From positions 62,001 through 126,000 of the IMG/VR virus record IMGVR_UViG_3300028840_001395: 64,000 bases of DNA. One strand, 5' to 3'. Positions 25,401 to 62,001 of this stretch are shown here, one piece after another. The translations under genes and the position numbers were made by a program. How positions within the stretch are numbered: the first letter of the stretch is position 1; each line of letters begins with the position of its first letter. The notes beneath the pieces are model-generated. The model ran no database searches. It was given only the letters and a program-made list of their open reading frames with translations, and was not told where the DNA came from.

Positions 25401-25555
25401 GGGGGAGTGGCGAAATTGGTAAACGCGCTGACTCAAACTGGCGTTTCCACCCTACCCTCCCGGCGAGGAGGAACTGCGAAGCGGCTTCAGAGTATCTGGG
25501 CTTGAAACCCAGTGCCTTTCGAGGCTTGTAGGTTCGATTCCTACCTCCCCCTCCA
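25401..25555 (+). tRNA. Interrupted tRNA (anticodon TGA) with a 68-nt insert in the anticodon stem
   Basis: Removing 25431-25498 gives an 87-nt type II cloverleaf. Confidence 0.65.
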
Positions 25556-28687: not shown

Positions 28688-29048
28688 GGGGGCGAAATGG
28701 CTTCGACTGGGGTGTTGAAGCTCAGGGCGCGTTCCGTGATTGTCGCAGGTCACGTTAAACGGCGGCACACTACAACTGCCAACGACGAGGCGGTTCTCCA
28801 GGCGGCTTAGGCCACCTCGTCCGACCGGGAACCCGTATCCCCGAGGGGTCCTGGGAGGGCGTAAGCAAAATCGAGGATAGGGTCTGCTGCTAGCTGCCCG
28901 GCTCGGCAACCTGAAACGTGCTAGGGATGCTGGTCACGAGAGTCTGCCACTGGACGCTCGGGGTCAAAAGACAAACCAGGGGCTATGAACGTAGGGCCTT
29001 GAAGTGGATTGCTTCAGGACAGGGGTTCGACTCCCCTCGCCTCCACCA
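28688..29048 (+). ncRNA. ssrA: tmRNA, tag (A)ANDEAVLQAA
   Basis: GGGGGCG...TTCGAC 5' end, G3.U70, tag ORF 28778-28810, T arm and CCA. Confidence 0.93.
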
Positions 29049-39106: not shown

Positions 39107-40513
39107 ATGTCGTTCAAGTACCAGGTCATCCGGGACGGGGACAACCGCTTCGTGCTCCCGCAAGTCGGGGAGATGAACTGCGAGGTCGTGGCCTTCCTGA
39201 CCGACGAACTCTTCGACGGAACCGACGAGAAGCTCTGGTCGCAAGCGGCGAACAGCGCCTCGTATCCGGGTGTCACCCACGTCTACCTGATGCCGGACAC
39301 CCACCTGGGCTACGGGGTGCCCATCGGCGGCGTCGTGATCACGGACGGCACGCTCATCCAGGCCGGGAGCGGCTACGACATCTCCTGCGGTGTCCTCTAC
39401 ATGAAGGCCCACATGGGAGCCATCGAGGTCACCGACCCGGAGAAGCGGCTCGCCTGGATCCGGGAGATCGAGAAGCGCGTCGCCACGGGTGTCGGCTCGC
39501 ACCAGCCGGAGTTGATGAAGTCGGCAGACCACAACGTCATTCAGTCCGCCTTCCTCAACGGGGCGGCTCCGCTCAACGTCTCCGCGACGCAGTGCGAGCG
39601 CCTGTGCATCCCGGTGGACGAGCAGTACTTCGACCCGAACCGTATCGAGCGAGCCATCACCAAGGCGGCTCCGCAGATGGGCAGCCTGGGCGGCGGGAAC
39701 CACTTCATCGAGATGCAGGTTGACCCGAGGGACTCGTCCGTCTGGCTCATGGTTCACTGCGGCTCGCGTGGGTTCGGCTGGCAGACGGCCAACCACTACT
39801 ACTACGCCGGGGCCGAGGCCCGTGGACTCGTGCCGAAGAAGCGGGAACAGTCCTGGCTCTACATGGACGAGCCGCTGGGCCGGGAGTACTGGGCGCACCA
39901 CAACGCGGCGGCGAACTACGCCATCGTCAACCGGCACGTCATCGCGGAGCGTCTGCGCGAGGCCACCCAGGAGGTGTTCAACGCCGACGCCAGCGTGTAC
40001 TACGAGATCAGTCACAACCTCATCCAAGAGGAGACCATCTTCCTGCCGGACGGATCCGTGGCCACGGGTTTCGTCCACCGCAAGGGCGCGACTCGCGCTC
40101 TGCCCCCGAAGCATCCGGAGCTGACGGGCACCGCCTGGATCGAGTCGGGGCACCCCTGCCTCATCCCCGGCTCGATGCAGGCGGGTGCGGCCATCCTGTT
40201 CGCCAAGGACTCCGCGAAGTCGGGCCAGTCGGTCAACCACGGCTCCGGGCGTCTCCTGGGTCGCGGCCAGGCCAAGCGGGAGTTCTCCGAGATGCAGGGC
40301 ATGATCGATGAGGAGATGAGCGAGGCCAAGGTCACCTGCGACGATGGCACCGAGGTCGAGGGCATCGTCCTCAACACGGACAAGACGCCGCTGGACGAGT
40401 GCGGCCACGCCTACAAGGATCTCGACACCGTTCTGGGTGTCCTCGAAGCCGAGGGCATCGCGGAGGTCAAGCACCGGATGTTCCCCGTAGCGAACATCAA
40501 GGGTCTGGACTGA
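39107..40513 (+). CDS. rtcB: RtcB-family RNA 3'-phosphate/5'-OH ligase
   Basis: MPDTHLGYGVPIG, DISCG, GSLGGGNHFIE, HCGSRG, HRKGAT, PGSM, HGSGR, YKD. Confidence 0.95.
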   Translation: MSFKYQVIRDGDNRFVLPQVGEMNCEVVAFLTDELFDGTDEKLWSQAANSASYPGVTHVYLMPDTHLGYGVPIGGVVITDGTLIQAGSGYDISCGVLYMKAHMGAIEVTDPEKRLAWIREIEKRVATGVGSHQPELMKSADHNVIQSAFLNGAAPLNVSATQCERLCIPVDEQYFDPNRIERAITKAAPQMGSLGGGNHFIEMQVDPRDSSVWLMVHCGSRGFGWQTANHYYYAGAEARGLVPKKREQSWLYMDEPLGREYWAHHNAAANYAIVNRHVIAERLREATQEVFNADASVYYEISHNLIQEETIFLPDGSVATGFVHRKGATRALPPKHPELTGTAWIESGHPCLIPGSMQAGAAILFAKDSAKSGQSVNHGSGRLLGRGQAKREFSEMQGMIDEEMSEAKVTCDDGTEVEGIVLNTDKTPLDECGHAYKDLDTVLGVLEAEGIAEVKHRMFPVANIKGLD

Positions 40514-47884: not shown

Positions 47885-48505
47885 CTACTCCCCGAACAGG
47901 TCGAGGATGTCTCCAATGTCATCGTGTTTCGTGAAGTTCCGGCAGAAGGTCGCCCGGTGCAGAGGCGTCAACCCGTGTTCCCGGATGGCCTCGATGTGGC
48001 CCTTCGACCCGTAGCCCTTGTTGCCCTCCCAGCCGTACTGGGGATACTGCTTGGCCATCTGCACCATGTAGGCATCTCGCTCGACCTTGGCCACGATGCT
48101 CGCAGCCCCGATGATCCAGTCCTTCGCGTCACCCTTGACGATGAACTCGGTCGGGATGGGCCGGAAGTCCACCCCGATGGGCTTGCCGTCGATGCGGACA
48201 GCTTCGACCGGGAGATCGAGAGCTAGCAGACCCTCGATGGCCTCCCAGAAGCACTCCAAGAGGGCGGGGTTGATGCCCACCTCGTCCACCCTGGCAGCCG
48301 TTCGGATGCTGACCCGATGGTGGAGGCCCGGATGTTCAGTTATCGCCTTGTGGAGCCTCTCACGCTTCCTGGGGGTCAGCTTCTTGCTGTCCGTCACGCC
48401 CTCGATGGGGGCCATATCGGCGGGGGCCATCACAGCACAGACGTAGCACCCACCGGCCAGGGGGCCTCGCCCAACCTCGTCTGCACCGATGATGTAAGTG
48501 CTCAT
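47885..48505 (-). CDS. rnhB: Ribonuclease HII
   Basis: GADEVGRGPLAG, DSKKL, KGD...AASIVAKVERD, NKGY. Confidence 0.95.
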   Translation of the reverse strand: MSTYIIGADEVGRGPLAGGCYVCAVMAPADMAPIEGVTDSKKLTPRKRERLHKAITEHPGLHHRVSIRTAARVDEVGINPALLECFWEAIEGLLALDLPVEAVRIDGKPIGVDFRPIPTEFIVKGDAKDWIIGAASIVAKVERDAYMVQMAKQYPQYGWEGNKGYGSKGHIEAIREHGLTPLHRATFCRNFTKHDDIGDILDLFGE

Positions 48506-48533: not shown

Positions 48534-48628
48534 TGGTAGCCCCGGAGGGAGTCGAACCCTCGGTGGAGCCCCTACGTCTCCGGCACGGTTTATAAGACCG
48601 CCGCTGTGACCGTTCAGCTTACGGGGCC
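48534..48628 (-). tRNA. tRNA-Ile(TAT) with long variable arm
   Basis: Loop CTTATAA, about 23-nt variable region, CCA. Confidence 0.75.
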
Positions 48629-49452
48629 AGCCCGTCCGCGAGGGCGAAGGTCTTGTCGGCCAGGTCGGGGTCGAGTCCCTTCATGGCCTCGGGGATGTCC
48701 TTCTGCTTGTAGCGGTCGGAGAAATGGGTCAAGACCAGCGCCTCGACCTGGGCCAACAGATGCTCCCGCACCCCGATCTGGAGCAGGTGCGTGTGGCCCC
48801 GGCTCTCCGCGAACTCCCCGGTGTGCTCGTTGGTCAGGAAGGTCGCCTCGGTGATAAGGATGCGGGCCTTCCGGATGCCGGAGATCCGGTCAAGGGTGCT
48901 GATACGGGTGTCCCCCGTGTACACGACCTCCAGGGTCTTGACCTCATCCGTGACCTCGACGCCCTCCTCCTGCCGGAGCCGTCCGATCTCCTTGCCAGGC
49001 AGGTCTGCGAACTCGGGCTTGAGCTTTCTCTTCGCCCGGAAGATGGCGTAGCCCTGCGACGGAACCGTGTGGTCAGTCGGGAACGCCGCCACCGACAGCC
49101 CCTTACCGAGCTTCATCTCTTCGTCGCCCGGAGCCAGGGGGAGCACGTCGCACTTGAAGCCGCCGTGCTGGAGAGGTTCCCACAGGGCGAACATCTGGTG
49201 GATGGGCTTGACCAGGTGAGGCGGCACGATGAAGCGGGAGGGCTTCATCCCCATCATGTTTCGGGTGAAGGCGTGCCGGACGATGCCCGCCATGTGGTCA
49301 ACGTGTCCGTGCGTGATGAGCACCGTTCGGATGCGCTGGGCCTCGCGGGGGCATACCCCCATGTCGAAGACCAGCTTGAAGTCGGGCATCCAGATGCAGG
49401 TTCCCAGGCCGCTGACGGACTCTCCTCGGATCTCGGTGTTCAGGATTCGCAT
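48619..49452 (-). CDS. rnz: Ribonuclease Z (MBL fold)
   Basis: THGHVDH, flexible arm KLKPEFADLPGKEI, TGDT, EAT, THFS.RY. Confidence 0.85.
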   Translation of the reverse strand: MRILNTEIRGESVSGLGTCIWMPDFKLVFDMGVCPREAQRIRTVLITHGHVDHMAGIVRHAFTRNMMGMKPSRFIVPPHLVKPIHQMFALWEPLQHGGFKCDVLPLAPGDEEMKLGKGLSVAAFPTDHTVPSQGYAIFRAKRKLKPEFADLPGKEIGRLRQEEGVEVTDEVKTLEVVYTGDTRISTLDRISGIRKARILITEATFLTNEHTGEFAESRGHTHLLQIGVREHLLAQVEALVLTHFSDRYKQKDIPEAMKGLDPDLADKTFALADGLAP

Positions 49453-49688
49453 GGCTCTTTTTCCTCCCGAGGCTCCATGCCTCACCTGTTCTTAGCAACC
49501 TCGCGCAACCTGGCGGGCTGCGGCGTCAGTGGAAGAACAGGTGTCCACCGAGACTACTCTATGAGAAGGAAAAGTAAGCGACCCCCTGCCCCGTTCCCGG
49601 TGCTCCGCTGGCGAGTCCTGGGTGGCGAGGCTTGTCCCCAGCGTGGTGGCCCTACCTCACTAAAGCCGTTCGCAGGGGGTCACGAAGT

Positions 49689-50327: not shown

Positions 50328-50403
50328 TGGCTGGGGCAGAGGGATTTGAACCCCCGATCACAGGGTCAGAGCCTGCTGCCTTACCAGACTTGGCTATGCC
50401 CCA
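50328..50403 (-). tRNA. tRNA-Gln(CTG)
   Basis: Loop CTCTGAC, CCA. Confidence 0.9.
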
Positions 50404-50408
50404 GCGGA

Positions 50409-50674
50409 TGGTGCGGGTGGTGGGAGTCGAACCCACAAGACCAGAACGTCTCTTATCGGGACTCACGCTTCCCTGTGGGGGGATGAGGTTCCCCAACCCC
50501 TGCCATTACTGACAGCGGCCCCAACCCGGTGCTTCTGAAGCCTAGAGACCGTGCCCCGTCCGGGAACGCCACAACGCAGCTTTTTACCTTCCGGTAGCAC
50601 CCTGGCCCCTCAATCACGAGGTTTCCGGTTTCACCTTGGTTTTCCGGTTCCGTTGCCTGTTAGGTCACACCCGC
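50409..50674 (-). ncRNA. 266-nt RNA with tRNA acceptor/T arm and a large insert in place of the anticodon loop
   Basis: GCGGGTG/CACCCGC-A-CCA, GTGGG-TTCGACT-CCCAC, ACCGGAA/TTCTGGT stem. Confidence 0.6.
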
Positions 50675-51230: not shown

Positions 51231-51306
51231 TGGAGCGGACGACCAGGATCGAACTGGCGACCTCCTGCTTGGCAAGCAGGTGCTCTACCGGCTGAGCTAC
51301 GTCCGC
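51231..51306 (-). tRNA. tRNA-Gly(GCC)
   Basis: Loop TTGCCAA, U73. Confidence 0.92.
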
Positions 51307-51926
51307 ATCTTGTCCCACCCCTCGGCTGCGGACGGGCTAACCGCCACGCACCTTTTCAGGTGAGCCACTTCCTCGGATGACCACACATAACAGGTGTCCG
51401 CGTAGAGGTCATACCCGACGATGAAGTCGAAGTCTGCCTTCTGGTATCGAACCGCCTTGTTGTGGCCTTGGACACACTTGAGAGACACAGAGGGAAGACC
51501 CTTCCCCGAGGCATGTGCCCACTTGACCTGCACCTTCAAGATTCGACCTGTCTCTGGAATCTCCACTACCCAGTCGGCCTTGTCTCCATCGAAAGGCGAC
51601 CCAAAGACATTGAACCCACAGACGGTCATCCTAAACAAGACGGCTGCCTCAGCGATCTTCGCCTTCTGAAGGCGCGAGGCATTGGGGTTCATCATCCGAT
51701 AAAGAGGGGACTCTGCCCCGCGTGACTTTTTGGGGTGCCCCCCTCGTTGATTTTCCTTACGCTTGGCTGCCTGCTCACTCTTTGTCAAAGGATGGGGCTT
51801 GAGCCATCCACTCAGAGAACCTTTCGAGGCCCCTGTCCGTTGGTGGATTTCTCGCAGAGACAAGCCTTCCTCAACTCGGAGCCGAATGCACTCCGCCTTC
51901 AATTTAGGATTAGACTTTCCGCGCAA
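51297..51926 (-). CDS. HTH + PD-(D/E)xK endonuclease (group I intron-associated type)
   Basis: LSLREIHQRTGASKGSLSGW; D...LKVQVK...DFDFIVGY. Confidence 0.8.
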   Translation of the reverse strand: MRGKSNPKLKAECIRLRVEEGLSLREIHQRTGASKGSLSGWLKPHPLTKSEQAAKRKENQRGGHPKKSRGAESPLYRMMNPNASRLQKAKIAEAAVLFRMTVCGFNVFGSPFDGDKADWVVEIPETGRILKVQVKWAHASGKGLPSVSLKCVQGHNKAVRYQKADFDFIVGYDLYADTCYVWSSEEVAHLKRCVAVSPSAAEGWDKMRT

Positions 51927-52061: not shown

Positions 52062-52184
52062 GGTGGGGAGAGACGGTGTTGCCGACTGTCAGTAGGGCTA
52101 CGGGAATCGAACCCGCATCTCCGGGCCTCACCCGGCGTGTTGTCCATTACACCAAGTCCTTGTCGGCGGCGTCCCGTGCCCACC
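52062..52184 (-). ncRNA. tRNA-like core with extended terminal stem (1)
   Basis: D and T arms, 5-nt anticodon loop, flanks pair GGTGGG/CCCACC and GCCGAC/GTCGGC. Confidence 0.6.
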
Positions 52185-52377: not shown

Positions 52378-52506
52378 GGTCGAGGCAAGGTGTGTGTCGC
52401 GTACAGGTGAAGAAAACGGGTCTCGAACCCGCAACCTTCGGCTTGATAAGGCCGACGCTCAACCATTTGAGCTATCTCTTCTGAAACGACACCGCAGTCC
52501 TCGACC
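52378..52506 (-). ncRNA. tRNA-like core with extended terminal stem (2)
   Basis: 8-nt loop CTTATCAA, no CCA, flanks pair GGTCGAGG/CCTCGACC and GTGTCG/CGACAC. Confidence 0.65.
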
Positions 52507-59799: not shown

Positions 59800-59929
59800 C
59801 AGGATTCGGGAGAGAGGCCCGGTCATCGGTGGGGGTCGAACCCACGACCTCCGGGTTGAAAAAGCCGTCAAGCCGTCCCGACGCTCTGCCGACTGAGCTA
59901 CGACTACGTGGACTTCATCCCGTCCCCTG
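59800..59929 (-). ncRNA. tRNA-like core with extended terminal stem (3)
   Basis: Canonical D and T arms, 21-nt anticodon loop, no CCA, flanks pair CAGG/CCTG and CGGGA/TCCCG. Confidence 0.6.
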
Positions 59930-61998: not shown

Positions 61999-62001
61999 AC
62001 C

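Follow-up and report, generated by a model that had tools for sequence, protein, structure and literature searches.

A tRNA-shaped RNA gene within a phage tRNA array

The window examined here is a 64,000-nucleotide (nt) stretch of IMG/VR virus record IMGVR_UViG_3300028840_001395 (positions 62,001 to 126,000), whose source is a phage genome of 435,804 bp with direct terminal repeats. An overall count puts the tRNAs at 67; ARAGORN makes 66 tRNA calls in the window that cover all 20 amino acids, and a true transfer-messenger RNA (tmRNA), which an initial annotation made from these letters alone had already recognized, scores 168 bits with the Rfam model at 28688-29048. Genes in the tRNA arrays are often spaced by just 2-12 nt, and all of the listed array tRNA sequences except a few aberrant calls encode their CCA ends. 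Among them, on the minus strand at 50409-50674, lies a 266-nt tRNA-shaped RNA gene that is the subject of this report. In the whole 435,804-bp genome, it is the sole combination of a T arm, an acceptor stem and a CC motif to which ARAGORN assigns no tRNA. Positions in the RNA are given as p, which equals 50675 minus the window coordinate, such that p1 is 50674 and p266 is 50409.

The sequence at 50409-50674 is a real, conserved RNA gene and not a chance resemblance to one. In relatives, homology starts exactly at G1 and stops at the CCA, and the flanks diverge. In two sequencing runs, the match opens exactly at p1 after unlike upstream sequence composed of a tRNA 3' end and 6-8 nt. Most relatives carry the RNA about 10 nt after an upstream tRNA-Gln and have the next tRNA-Gln 3-8 nt past the CCA; in the window, ARAGORN starts a tRNA-Gln at 50403, 5 nt past the 3' end. 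The nucleotide at position -1 is U in 9/9 close copies. No promoter-like or terminator-like site was found adjoining the RNA. Another huge phage has a normal tRNA-Leu(UAA) with exactly the same acceptor and T-arm sequences.

A 54-amino acid frame inside the RNA has no homolog, and every candidate reading frame suffers indels and exclusively non-synonymous changes among close relatives. Antisense matches of the RNA to the phage genome, which would mark possible targets, occur at chance level.

Architecture of the window RNA

The two ends of the RNA form the skeleton of a tRNA, as the initial annotation had described. The 5' acceptor strand (p1-7, GCGGGUG, 50668..50674, minus strand, as are all parts of the RNA) makes seven perfect pairs with p256-262 (CACCCGC). 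This 3' strand is followed directly in the sequence by discriminator A263 and an encoded CCA, which together with it occupy 50409..50419. One U-A pair of the stem becomes U-G in relative L063. The third pair, G3-C260, corresponds to G3-C70 in tRNA numbering. Nucleotides U8-G9 precede a D arm (p10-26, 50649..50665) that the alignment of close relatives defines as a 3-bp stem and an 11-nt loop containing A14, A15, G18G19 and A21. Short forms of the family, described below, have a canonical 4-bp D stem. The T arm (p239-255, 50420..50436) reads GUGGG-UUCGACU-CCCAC and includes the G53-C61 pair; its pair 240/254 is seen as U-A, U-G and C-G. The elbow nucleotides U8, A14, G18G19, G53, U54, U55, C56, A58 and C61 are all present and conserved. 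The tRNA core is thus kept, with a 7-bp acceptor stem on a 5-bp T stem, a T loop, a D loop and A15 matched with U48.

The initial annotation had about 190 nt of structured sequence replacing the anticodon loop. That position is occupied instead by a small arm named Ha (50625..50647), a 4-bp stem (p28-31/47-50) with a 15-nt loop that starts AAAAC, and the bulk of the inserted sequence lies between Ha and the T arm, at the position of a variable arm. Ha is supported by covariation: relatives have U-A in place of C-G at pair 28/50 and in place of G-C at pair 31/47.

The window copy is a long form of the RNA, with about 75 extra nt (helices Hb, Hc and Hd) between Ha and a conserved core domain. 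Hairpin Hb (p54-67, 50608..50621) is found in long forms only, and its pairs 55/66 and 56/65 covary between C-G and U-A. The rest of the insertion (50551..50607) contains the 5' strand of Hc, helix Hd and three hairpins. Hc joins p68-74 to p230-236, and changes at p69, p70 and p74 all preserve pairing. In Hd (p75-78/121-124), pair 76/123 is seen as U-A, U-G and C-G. The three hairpins span p79-90, p95-107 and p111-120; the stem of the first is wholly different yet still paired in L087.

The core domain (p126-227, 50448..50549) is 95-98% identical among close relatives. It is closed by helix Hf, in which p126-131 (GUCUCU) pairs with p222-227 (AGAGAC); the initial annotation had picked out this complementarity in its DNA form, GTCTCT/AGAGAC. 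An inner helix, Hj (p152-155 with p196-199, 50476..50523), has a U152-A199 pair in the window and C152-G199 in its relatives. Hj encloses a GUAA-capped hairpin (p156-179) and a second hairpin, GGGG-AACCUCAU-CCCC (p181-196). Two strands of the core are strongly conserved. One, CAGGGAAGCG (p200-209, 50466..50476), corresponds to invariant columns in alignment A5; it follows A199 in the window RNA, where other members have G199. The other, GCACCGGG (p143-150, 50525-50532), is kept in all members aligned in A5 and reads GCACCGG in phage Satis.

Selection and covariation among close relatives

Contigs of close relatives were taken from ENA, JGI and Logan assemblies via the 90% protein cluster of P0001, a small open reading frame (ORF) upstream of the RNA. 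They supply 12 close copies of the RNA from independent metagenomes, 10 of them full length, with 88-91% identity to the window RNA. This conservation is not uniform. Identity to the window is 80-89% in the 5' part (p1-125) and 95-98% in the core (p126-217), compared with 74-96% for neighbouring tRNAs. In the microbial-mat run X4, few differences are listed inside the RNA, versus about 25% in the flanks, and two of the changes (p76 U>C and p123 A>G) compensate for one another.

RNAalifold and pair counting were applied to a close set of eight homologs. Pairing is maintained in 98.8% of cells, and five pairs carry double changes. The observed score was not attained by any of 500 shuffles, and control structures slid along the alignment fall to 39-54% paired. 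The stems supported in this set are the acceptor, D, Ha, Hb (p54-57/64-67) and T stems. Ha caps a loop of 13-16 nt with a conserved AAAACCA start. Pair counts favour Hd and are compatible with Hc and Hf. RNAalifold also proposed a helix between p74-78 and p143-147. It was rejected, since only two of its five pairs stay intact in every relative. Taken as sequence evidence, these patterns show that the RNA gene is under purifying selection.

A wider family of phage RNAs

A covariance model (R1), which gives the window RNA 302.6 bits, and a second model (R2) were used to look further afield. On 22 huge-phage records picked via P0001, R1 finds only class II tRNAs and tRNA pairs. On records picked via the RtcB RNA ligase, it finds a 281-nt homolog in a 437-kb phage (47.6 bits). 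This RNA has a wholly different acceptor stem and the same architecture, with the strings GCACCGGG and GCAGGGAAGCG conserved. A search pattern that combines the conserved core strings with the T loop recovered seven loci, six more viral contigs among them, and R2 confirms these contigs at 52-84 bits. Of these, a 452-kb phage carries a 265-nt long form, and contigs of 14-159 kb carry five short forms of 187-195 nt. Eight other phage contigs in all have such distant homologs, 187-281 nt in length. All members recovered on contigs sit inside tRNA arrays, a few bases from the adjoining tRNAs.

Short forms used as blastn queries reveal the family in at least 16 cultured Streptomyces phages of two kinds, Gilson-like (about 128-130 kb) and Satis-like (about 185 kb). 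The RNA lies at about 81040-81232 in Gilson (NC_048742.1), where it measures about 193 nt, and at about 125547-125782 in Satis (MH576962.1), where it measures about 236 nt. Fifteen of these records have no annotated feature at the site and one labels a hypothetical protein. The latter is gene 140 of Streptomyces phage Moab (MT114162.1), which is probably a false ORF drawn over the RNA gene. Other searches returned no members. Exact-pattern scans for the ends or the core of the window RNA gave the source contig, normal tRNA-Leu or nothing. The core pattern has two chance matches, both inside protein genes, in 185,579 prokaryote genomes, and blastn of the window region against cultured phages finds just a tRNA-Gln.

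The predicted consensus reads, from the 5' end, as a 7-bp acceptor stem, U8, a D arm with GG, Ha, a few linker bases and Hf. Within Hf, a near-invariant strand ending GCACCGG(G) leads to Hj, which is followed by a variable hairpin (GUAA-capped in the window), a hairpin GGGG-AACCUUAN-CCCC, the return strand of Hj and the invariant strand GCAGGGAAGCG; a small hairpin then precedes the Hf return strand. A linker of 6-11 nt leads on to the T arm, after which the 3' acceptor strand and the discriminator complete the molecule. The core is a three-way-junction domain of about 100 nt placed where a tRNA has its variable arm, and long forms add 75-90 nt between Ha and Hf.

Many of these helices differ in sequence between members and keep their pairing. 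Among six short forms, compensatory changes affect 16 of 42 predicted pairs, including five of the seven in the acceptor stem and four of the five in the T stem. Ha is a 4-5-bp stem whose sequence changes fully between members, and most keep the loop motif AAAACGGA; the loop itself measures 8-11 nt in short forms and 13-16 nt, with its AAAAC start, in the window lineage. Hf is about 6 bp long and always lies equally far from the invariant motifs, although each lineage forms it from complementary strands of its own (GUUCUC/GAGAAC, CUAGAG/CUCUAG, GCCAGG/CCUGGC, GGCAAG/CUUGCC, GGUAGG/UCUACC and GGUGAG/CUCACC in distant members). Hj is 5-6 bp across the family and is similarly varied (CCGGG/CCCGG, CCGAG/CUCGG, GCCAUG/CAUGGC and GCUGUG/CACAGC). 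Acceptor stems differ completely between family members, and only those of L106 and L108 carry G3-U70. The discriminator is A in eight lineages and G in two, and CCA is encoded in some members only.

Comparison with known RNA families

The window RNA has no match in Rfam 15 at gathering thresholds. At E <= 10, a 500-nt region around it yields, apart from noise, one match of the tmRNA model to the 17 nt of the T arm, and four close relatives (E <= 1) and nine distant members (E <= 0.05) match only fragments of the tRNA clan. The outcome is thus negative for group I introns, tmRNA, GOLLD, ROOL, YrlA, self-cleaving ribozymes, signal recognition particle (SRP) RNA and RNase P RNA; group I introns, tmRNA and GOLLD-type RNAs were the models against which the initial annotation had proposed to check the sequence. 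Neither ARAGORN nor the Rfam tRNA model calls a canonical tRNA in the window RNA or in any relative, and the loop at the anticodon-arm position has 8-15 nt, not 7 nt. No description of the family was found in the literature searched. These comparisons support its assignment as a new family among tRNA-like non-coding RNAs that is absent from Rfam 15, and the suggestion of a new non-coding class with a tRNA cap has held up in the form of this covarying set. Several other lookalikes proved to be short motif matches of chance size with no Rfam backing: SRP helix 8, the 23S GTPase centre, RNase P P4, the type I-F CRISPR repeat, a cobalamin riboswitch and 16S helix 45.

YrlA RNAs (RF02553) resemble the family in that they are non-coding mimics of the tRNA D/T elbow and are sometimes linked to RtcB. 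However, the tRNA-like module of YrlA is internal and the ends of that RNA form a Ro60-binding stem, whereas the ends of the family RNA form an acceptor stem. The YrlA model gives 18-30 bits against a threshold of 69, with matches that span neighbouring tRNAs, and the genome has no TROVE (Ro60) gene.

By context and design, the nearest analogue appears to be RNA C of phage T4 (species 1 RNA, rnaC). RNA C and RNA D are small stable RNAs of unknown function from the tRNA cluster of that phage (PMC3014915, PMC9697503). The 139-nt rnaC has paired termini and a canonical T arm (CCGGG-UUCGAAU-CCCGG) near its 3' end. It is half the size of the window RNA, shows no sequence similarity to it and, by eye, lacks a D arm, the AAAACGGA loop and the core motifs. 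The resemblance, compared by eye only, is one of analogy and not of a homologous family.

Alternative explanations

The RNA might be an unusual decoding tRNA whose enlarged loop reads a special signal, such as a frameshift or recoding site, and whose giant variable arm serves as an identity or regulatory element. The tRNA core is complete, and class II tRNAs tolerate long variable arms. Like the variable arms of class II tRNAs (Leu, Ser and Tyr), the extra domain leaves the molecule between the T arm and the arm at the anticodon position, and the window copy shares with these tRNAs a 3-bp D stem with an 11-nt loop. A tRNA(CUA) lies directly upstream of the RNA in L103, a 'ctaa' tRNA lies upstream in L108, and the window genome has a tRNA(CUA) and two tRNAs with four-base anticodons; no alternative genetic code was assumed in these assignments. 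However, the loop lacks the U33 and purine-37 pattern and differs in length by lineage, and acceptor identity is not conserved. The side domain of 100-190 nt is without precedent in a decoding tRNA, since class II variable arms have 13-21 nt. The family has no 7-nt anticodon loop, and its short forms have D stems of the 4-bp class I type. A decoding function is consequently judged improbable.

The initial annotation had raised the possibility of an intron-containing tRNA, in which a group I or other insert is spliced out to leave a working tRNA such as tRNA-Leu(UAA) or tRNA-Val(GAC). The existence of a phage tRNA-Leu(UAA) with an identical acceptor and T arm fits this idea, as tRNA-Leu(UAA) is the classic bacterial host of group I introns. 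The cyanobacterial and plastid examples share with the window RNA a tRNA-Leu-like frame, a structured insert of about 200 nt and GNRA loops. The phage also encodes an RtcB RNA ligase (39242-40504, plus strand, 299 bits) between two tRNA arrays. Every interval whose deletion leaves 70-95 nt was removed in turn, and the 1,807 resulting constructs were run through ARAGORN. The sole coherent product, accepted once about p32-221 is deleted, is a 76-nt tRNA-Val(GAC) with A at position 33 and p28-32 paired with p230-234.

This product does not survive comparison with relatives. Positions p28-31 covary with p47-50, within Ha, and not with p230-234, where L046 would have a U-C mismatch. The putative anticodon GAC becomes GGC in two relatives, and the loop is one base shorter in L063. 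Mismatches of this kind, together with an altered anticodon and loop, are not the behaviour of a working tRNA. If the Hf-closed domain is taken out of the short forms, what is left is a conserved 10-nt loop and not an anticodon loop. The U-G wobble of a group I P1 helix is also missing. Just ahead of the would-be 5' splice site, most copies have G31, which pairs with C47, and L046, L042 and L062 have U31, which pairs with A47.

Searches for splicing signals agree with the comparative evidence. At permissive thresholds, 14 sequences match no Rfam intron or ribozyme family, and the group I core (RF00028) is unmatched at E <= 10 on the window region. The insert, unlike that of the tRNA-Leu(UAA) introns, lies outside the anticodon loop. 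The intron mode of ARAGORN gives only a mismatched model that starts inside the upstream ORF, no bulge-helix-bulge motif was seen by eye, and the phage has no tRNA-splicing endonuclease. Since a conserved tRNA is not recovered by any excision, the intron reading lacks support and we regard it as very unlikely.

A second tmRNA-like rescue RNA, which would be aminoacylated and enter stalled ribosomes, possibly with a tag frame, is more doubtful still. Like tmRNA (SsrA, RF00023), the RNA encloses a large structured insert between ends that form an acceptor stem with CCA next to a canonical T arm, and both occur in phage tRNA regions. The Rfam tmRNA model spans one member end to end (22.6 bits, E = 1.6e-5), two members combine G3-U70 with A73, and a short frame at p95 starts GCU GCG after a run of A residues. 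However, all scores fall under the 47-bit threshold, and the window RNA reaches 15 bits through the T arm only. G3-C260 is invariant in 12/12 close copies, and G3-U70 is missing from most members of the family. The p95-133 frame takes only non-synonymous changes and is missing from short forms. The family has a real D stem and, where tmRNA has none, an extra arm with a conserved loop, and no series of pseudoknots was detected. ARAGORN calls no tmRNA at the RNA loci, the phage encodes no SmpB and a standard tmRNA is already present in every genome checked. Genome announcements of cluster BE1 phages give 43-48 tRNAs and one tmRNA among the features that they report (PMC5764925). The judgment of the initial annotation that the RNA is not a tmRNA, based on G3-C70 and the presence of a true tmRNA elsewhere, is borne out.

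A decayed tRNA gene or two unrelated remnants with no function, for example fragments of an attachment site, could account for the overlap of an upstream ORF with the 5' strand, the non-significant folding score and the presence of other odd tRNA-like genes in the array, but this explanation is contradicted by a sequence conserved from end to end, both across no fewer than 10 independent samples and, with compensatory changes, in distant phages, and by a core that is better conserved than neighbouring tRNAs, and it can be set aside with near certainty.

Neighbouring genes and other unusual tRNA-like genes

P0001 (50660..50914, minus strand) is an 84-amino acid ORF assigned to phrog_20427. It is a neighbour upstream of the RNA and not part of it. 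Its family consists of small proteins of unknown function with more than 600 relatives, and tRNA genes surround it in seven of ten scanned loci (within L002-L034). P0001 is conserved only at residues 5-70; its non-conserved tail, stop codon included, extends over the first 15 nt of the RNA. The same overlap with the RNA 5' end is seen in L045 and L062, and most relatives have a tRNA-Gln(CUG) between the P0001 ORF and the RNA. Where the genes overlap, RNase P cleavage at G1 would remove the P0001 stop codon. No relatives were found for a second predicted protein, P0002.

Several protein genes are interleaved with the tRNAs. They encode a metallo-beta-lactamase-fold protein, possibly of RNase Z/BN type (48622-49485, minus strand), a PD-(D/E)XK nuclease (51300-51926, minus strand) and RNase HII (47888-48505, minus strand). 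The array also encodes a cytidylyltransferase-like protein. Elsewhere in the genome, a 2,495-amino acid frame contains a PolyA_pol domain of the CCA-adding type at C1:15386-15838. Outside the window, ARAGORN places a tRNA(CUA), of the amber-suppressor type, and two tRNAs with the four-base anticodon GGGA on G000:C1 at 241943-242033 (minus strand), 412787-412863 (plus strand) and 412876-412950 (plus strand).

A second oversized tRNA-like gene, of 155 nt, is located at 25401-25555 on the plus strand. It has a perfect acceptor stem (GGGGGAG/CUCCCCC), after which the sequence runs through a D arm of class II type and about 66 nt of insert to the anticodon (UGA), variable and T arms. The whole gene is covered by the Rfam tRNA model at 39.9 bits, whereas ARAGORN takes only the 3' 89 nt, as a tRNA-Ser mismatched at two acceptor positions. 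A 402-kb phage carries a 150-nt RNA (L088:1501-1650) that shares the acceptor, D and T arms of this gene but not its interior.

Aberrant calls in the window arrays, all on the minus strand, include a 95-nt tRNA-Ile(UAU) with a long extra arm (48534-48628), a tRNA with the four-base anticodon UAUC (52406-52481), an 87-nt tRNA with an undetermined anticodon (59821-59907) and a 70-nt 'tRNA-Leu' that lacks CCA (52092-52161). The related huge phages L025, L012, L008 and L015 carry many class I tRNAs of abnormal length, 83-102 nt, among them Asn, Lys, Glu, Asp and Ile tRNAs lengthened by additional arms or by insertions. ARAGORN misses several tRNAs of 74-102 nt in these four phages, one of which has a UCA anticodon loop (L015:3224-3306).

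Interpretation and implications

The window RNA is probably a stable, non-decoding RNA with the shape of a tRNA, representing an undescribed family that resides inside the tRNA arrays of large phages. Its acceptor stem appears to be required as a shape. Acceptor stems are free to change across the family, and the stem of the window RNA equals that of a tRNA-Leu in another phage, which suggests that stems may be swapped with those of neighbouring tRNA genes. The variable stems and discriminators, and a CCA that is not always encoded, make a conserved leucine identity unlikely and lower the odds of the leucine-chargeable RNA that the acceptor stem of the window copy might otherwise imply.

Several observations weigh against this interpretation or temper it. 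No RNA sequencing run was found to contain the locus. The folding energy of the 266-nt RNA as a single sequence is no better than that of shuffles (z = 0.13), so the support for its structure is comparative and not thermodynamic. In the window lineage, p222-238 folds in two ways that the close set supports equally, one using Hf and Hc and the other a local hairpin (p223-227/234-238). In distant members, Hf and Hj were placed by eye and with a simple script, and a naive shuffle test of the longest helix does not by itself discriminate them; the argument for these helices is that each sits at a fixed position beside invariant motifs. The genome has no LeuRS (a class I synthetase), SmpB, Ro60, tRNA-splicing endonuclease or L/F-transferase, and no partner gene is consistently adjacent to the RNA. 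Finally, a function as tRNA mimic or decoy is one that we infer.

The following pathway could nevertheless give rise to such an RNA. The array and the RNA would be transcribed together, RNase P would release the RNA at G1, and the tRNA 3'-end machinery would cut after the discriminator or the CCA. The tRNA fold would then stabilize the product, while the conserved Ha loop and the core domain would carry its activity. Its most plausible role is to bind or occupy a tRNA-handling partner during phage takeover of translation. Candidate partners include the ribosome, a tRNA-modifying or tRNA-cleaving enzyme and a phage protein.

A more far-reaching proposal is that the family constitutes a third kind of RNA beside tRNA and tmRNA. 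It would be a matured, CCA-tailed and possibly aminoacylated mimic that engages ribosomes or synthetases, with its loop and domain gripping host translation or a tRNA-directed defence. We consider this version unlikely.

As a non-decoding RNA of tRNA shape, the family bears on a broader question. Large phages carry near-complete tRNA sets, and the reason is debated. A conserved tRNA-shaped gene in these arrays that does not decode points to a function in tRNA biology that annotation has missed. Rfam 15 lacks the RNA, and so do almost all GenBank records of its cultured phage carriers in their annotation. Phage tRNA counters and ORF callers working in array gaps should mask the gene. The family would be a natural case of the 'tRNA scaffold' idea, and RNA C of phage T4, which has long lacked an explanation, may be related to it in design. 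Because members occur in easily grown Streptomyces phages, the expression, processing, charging and partners of the RNA, and the effect of its knockout, are directly testable.

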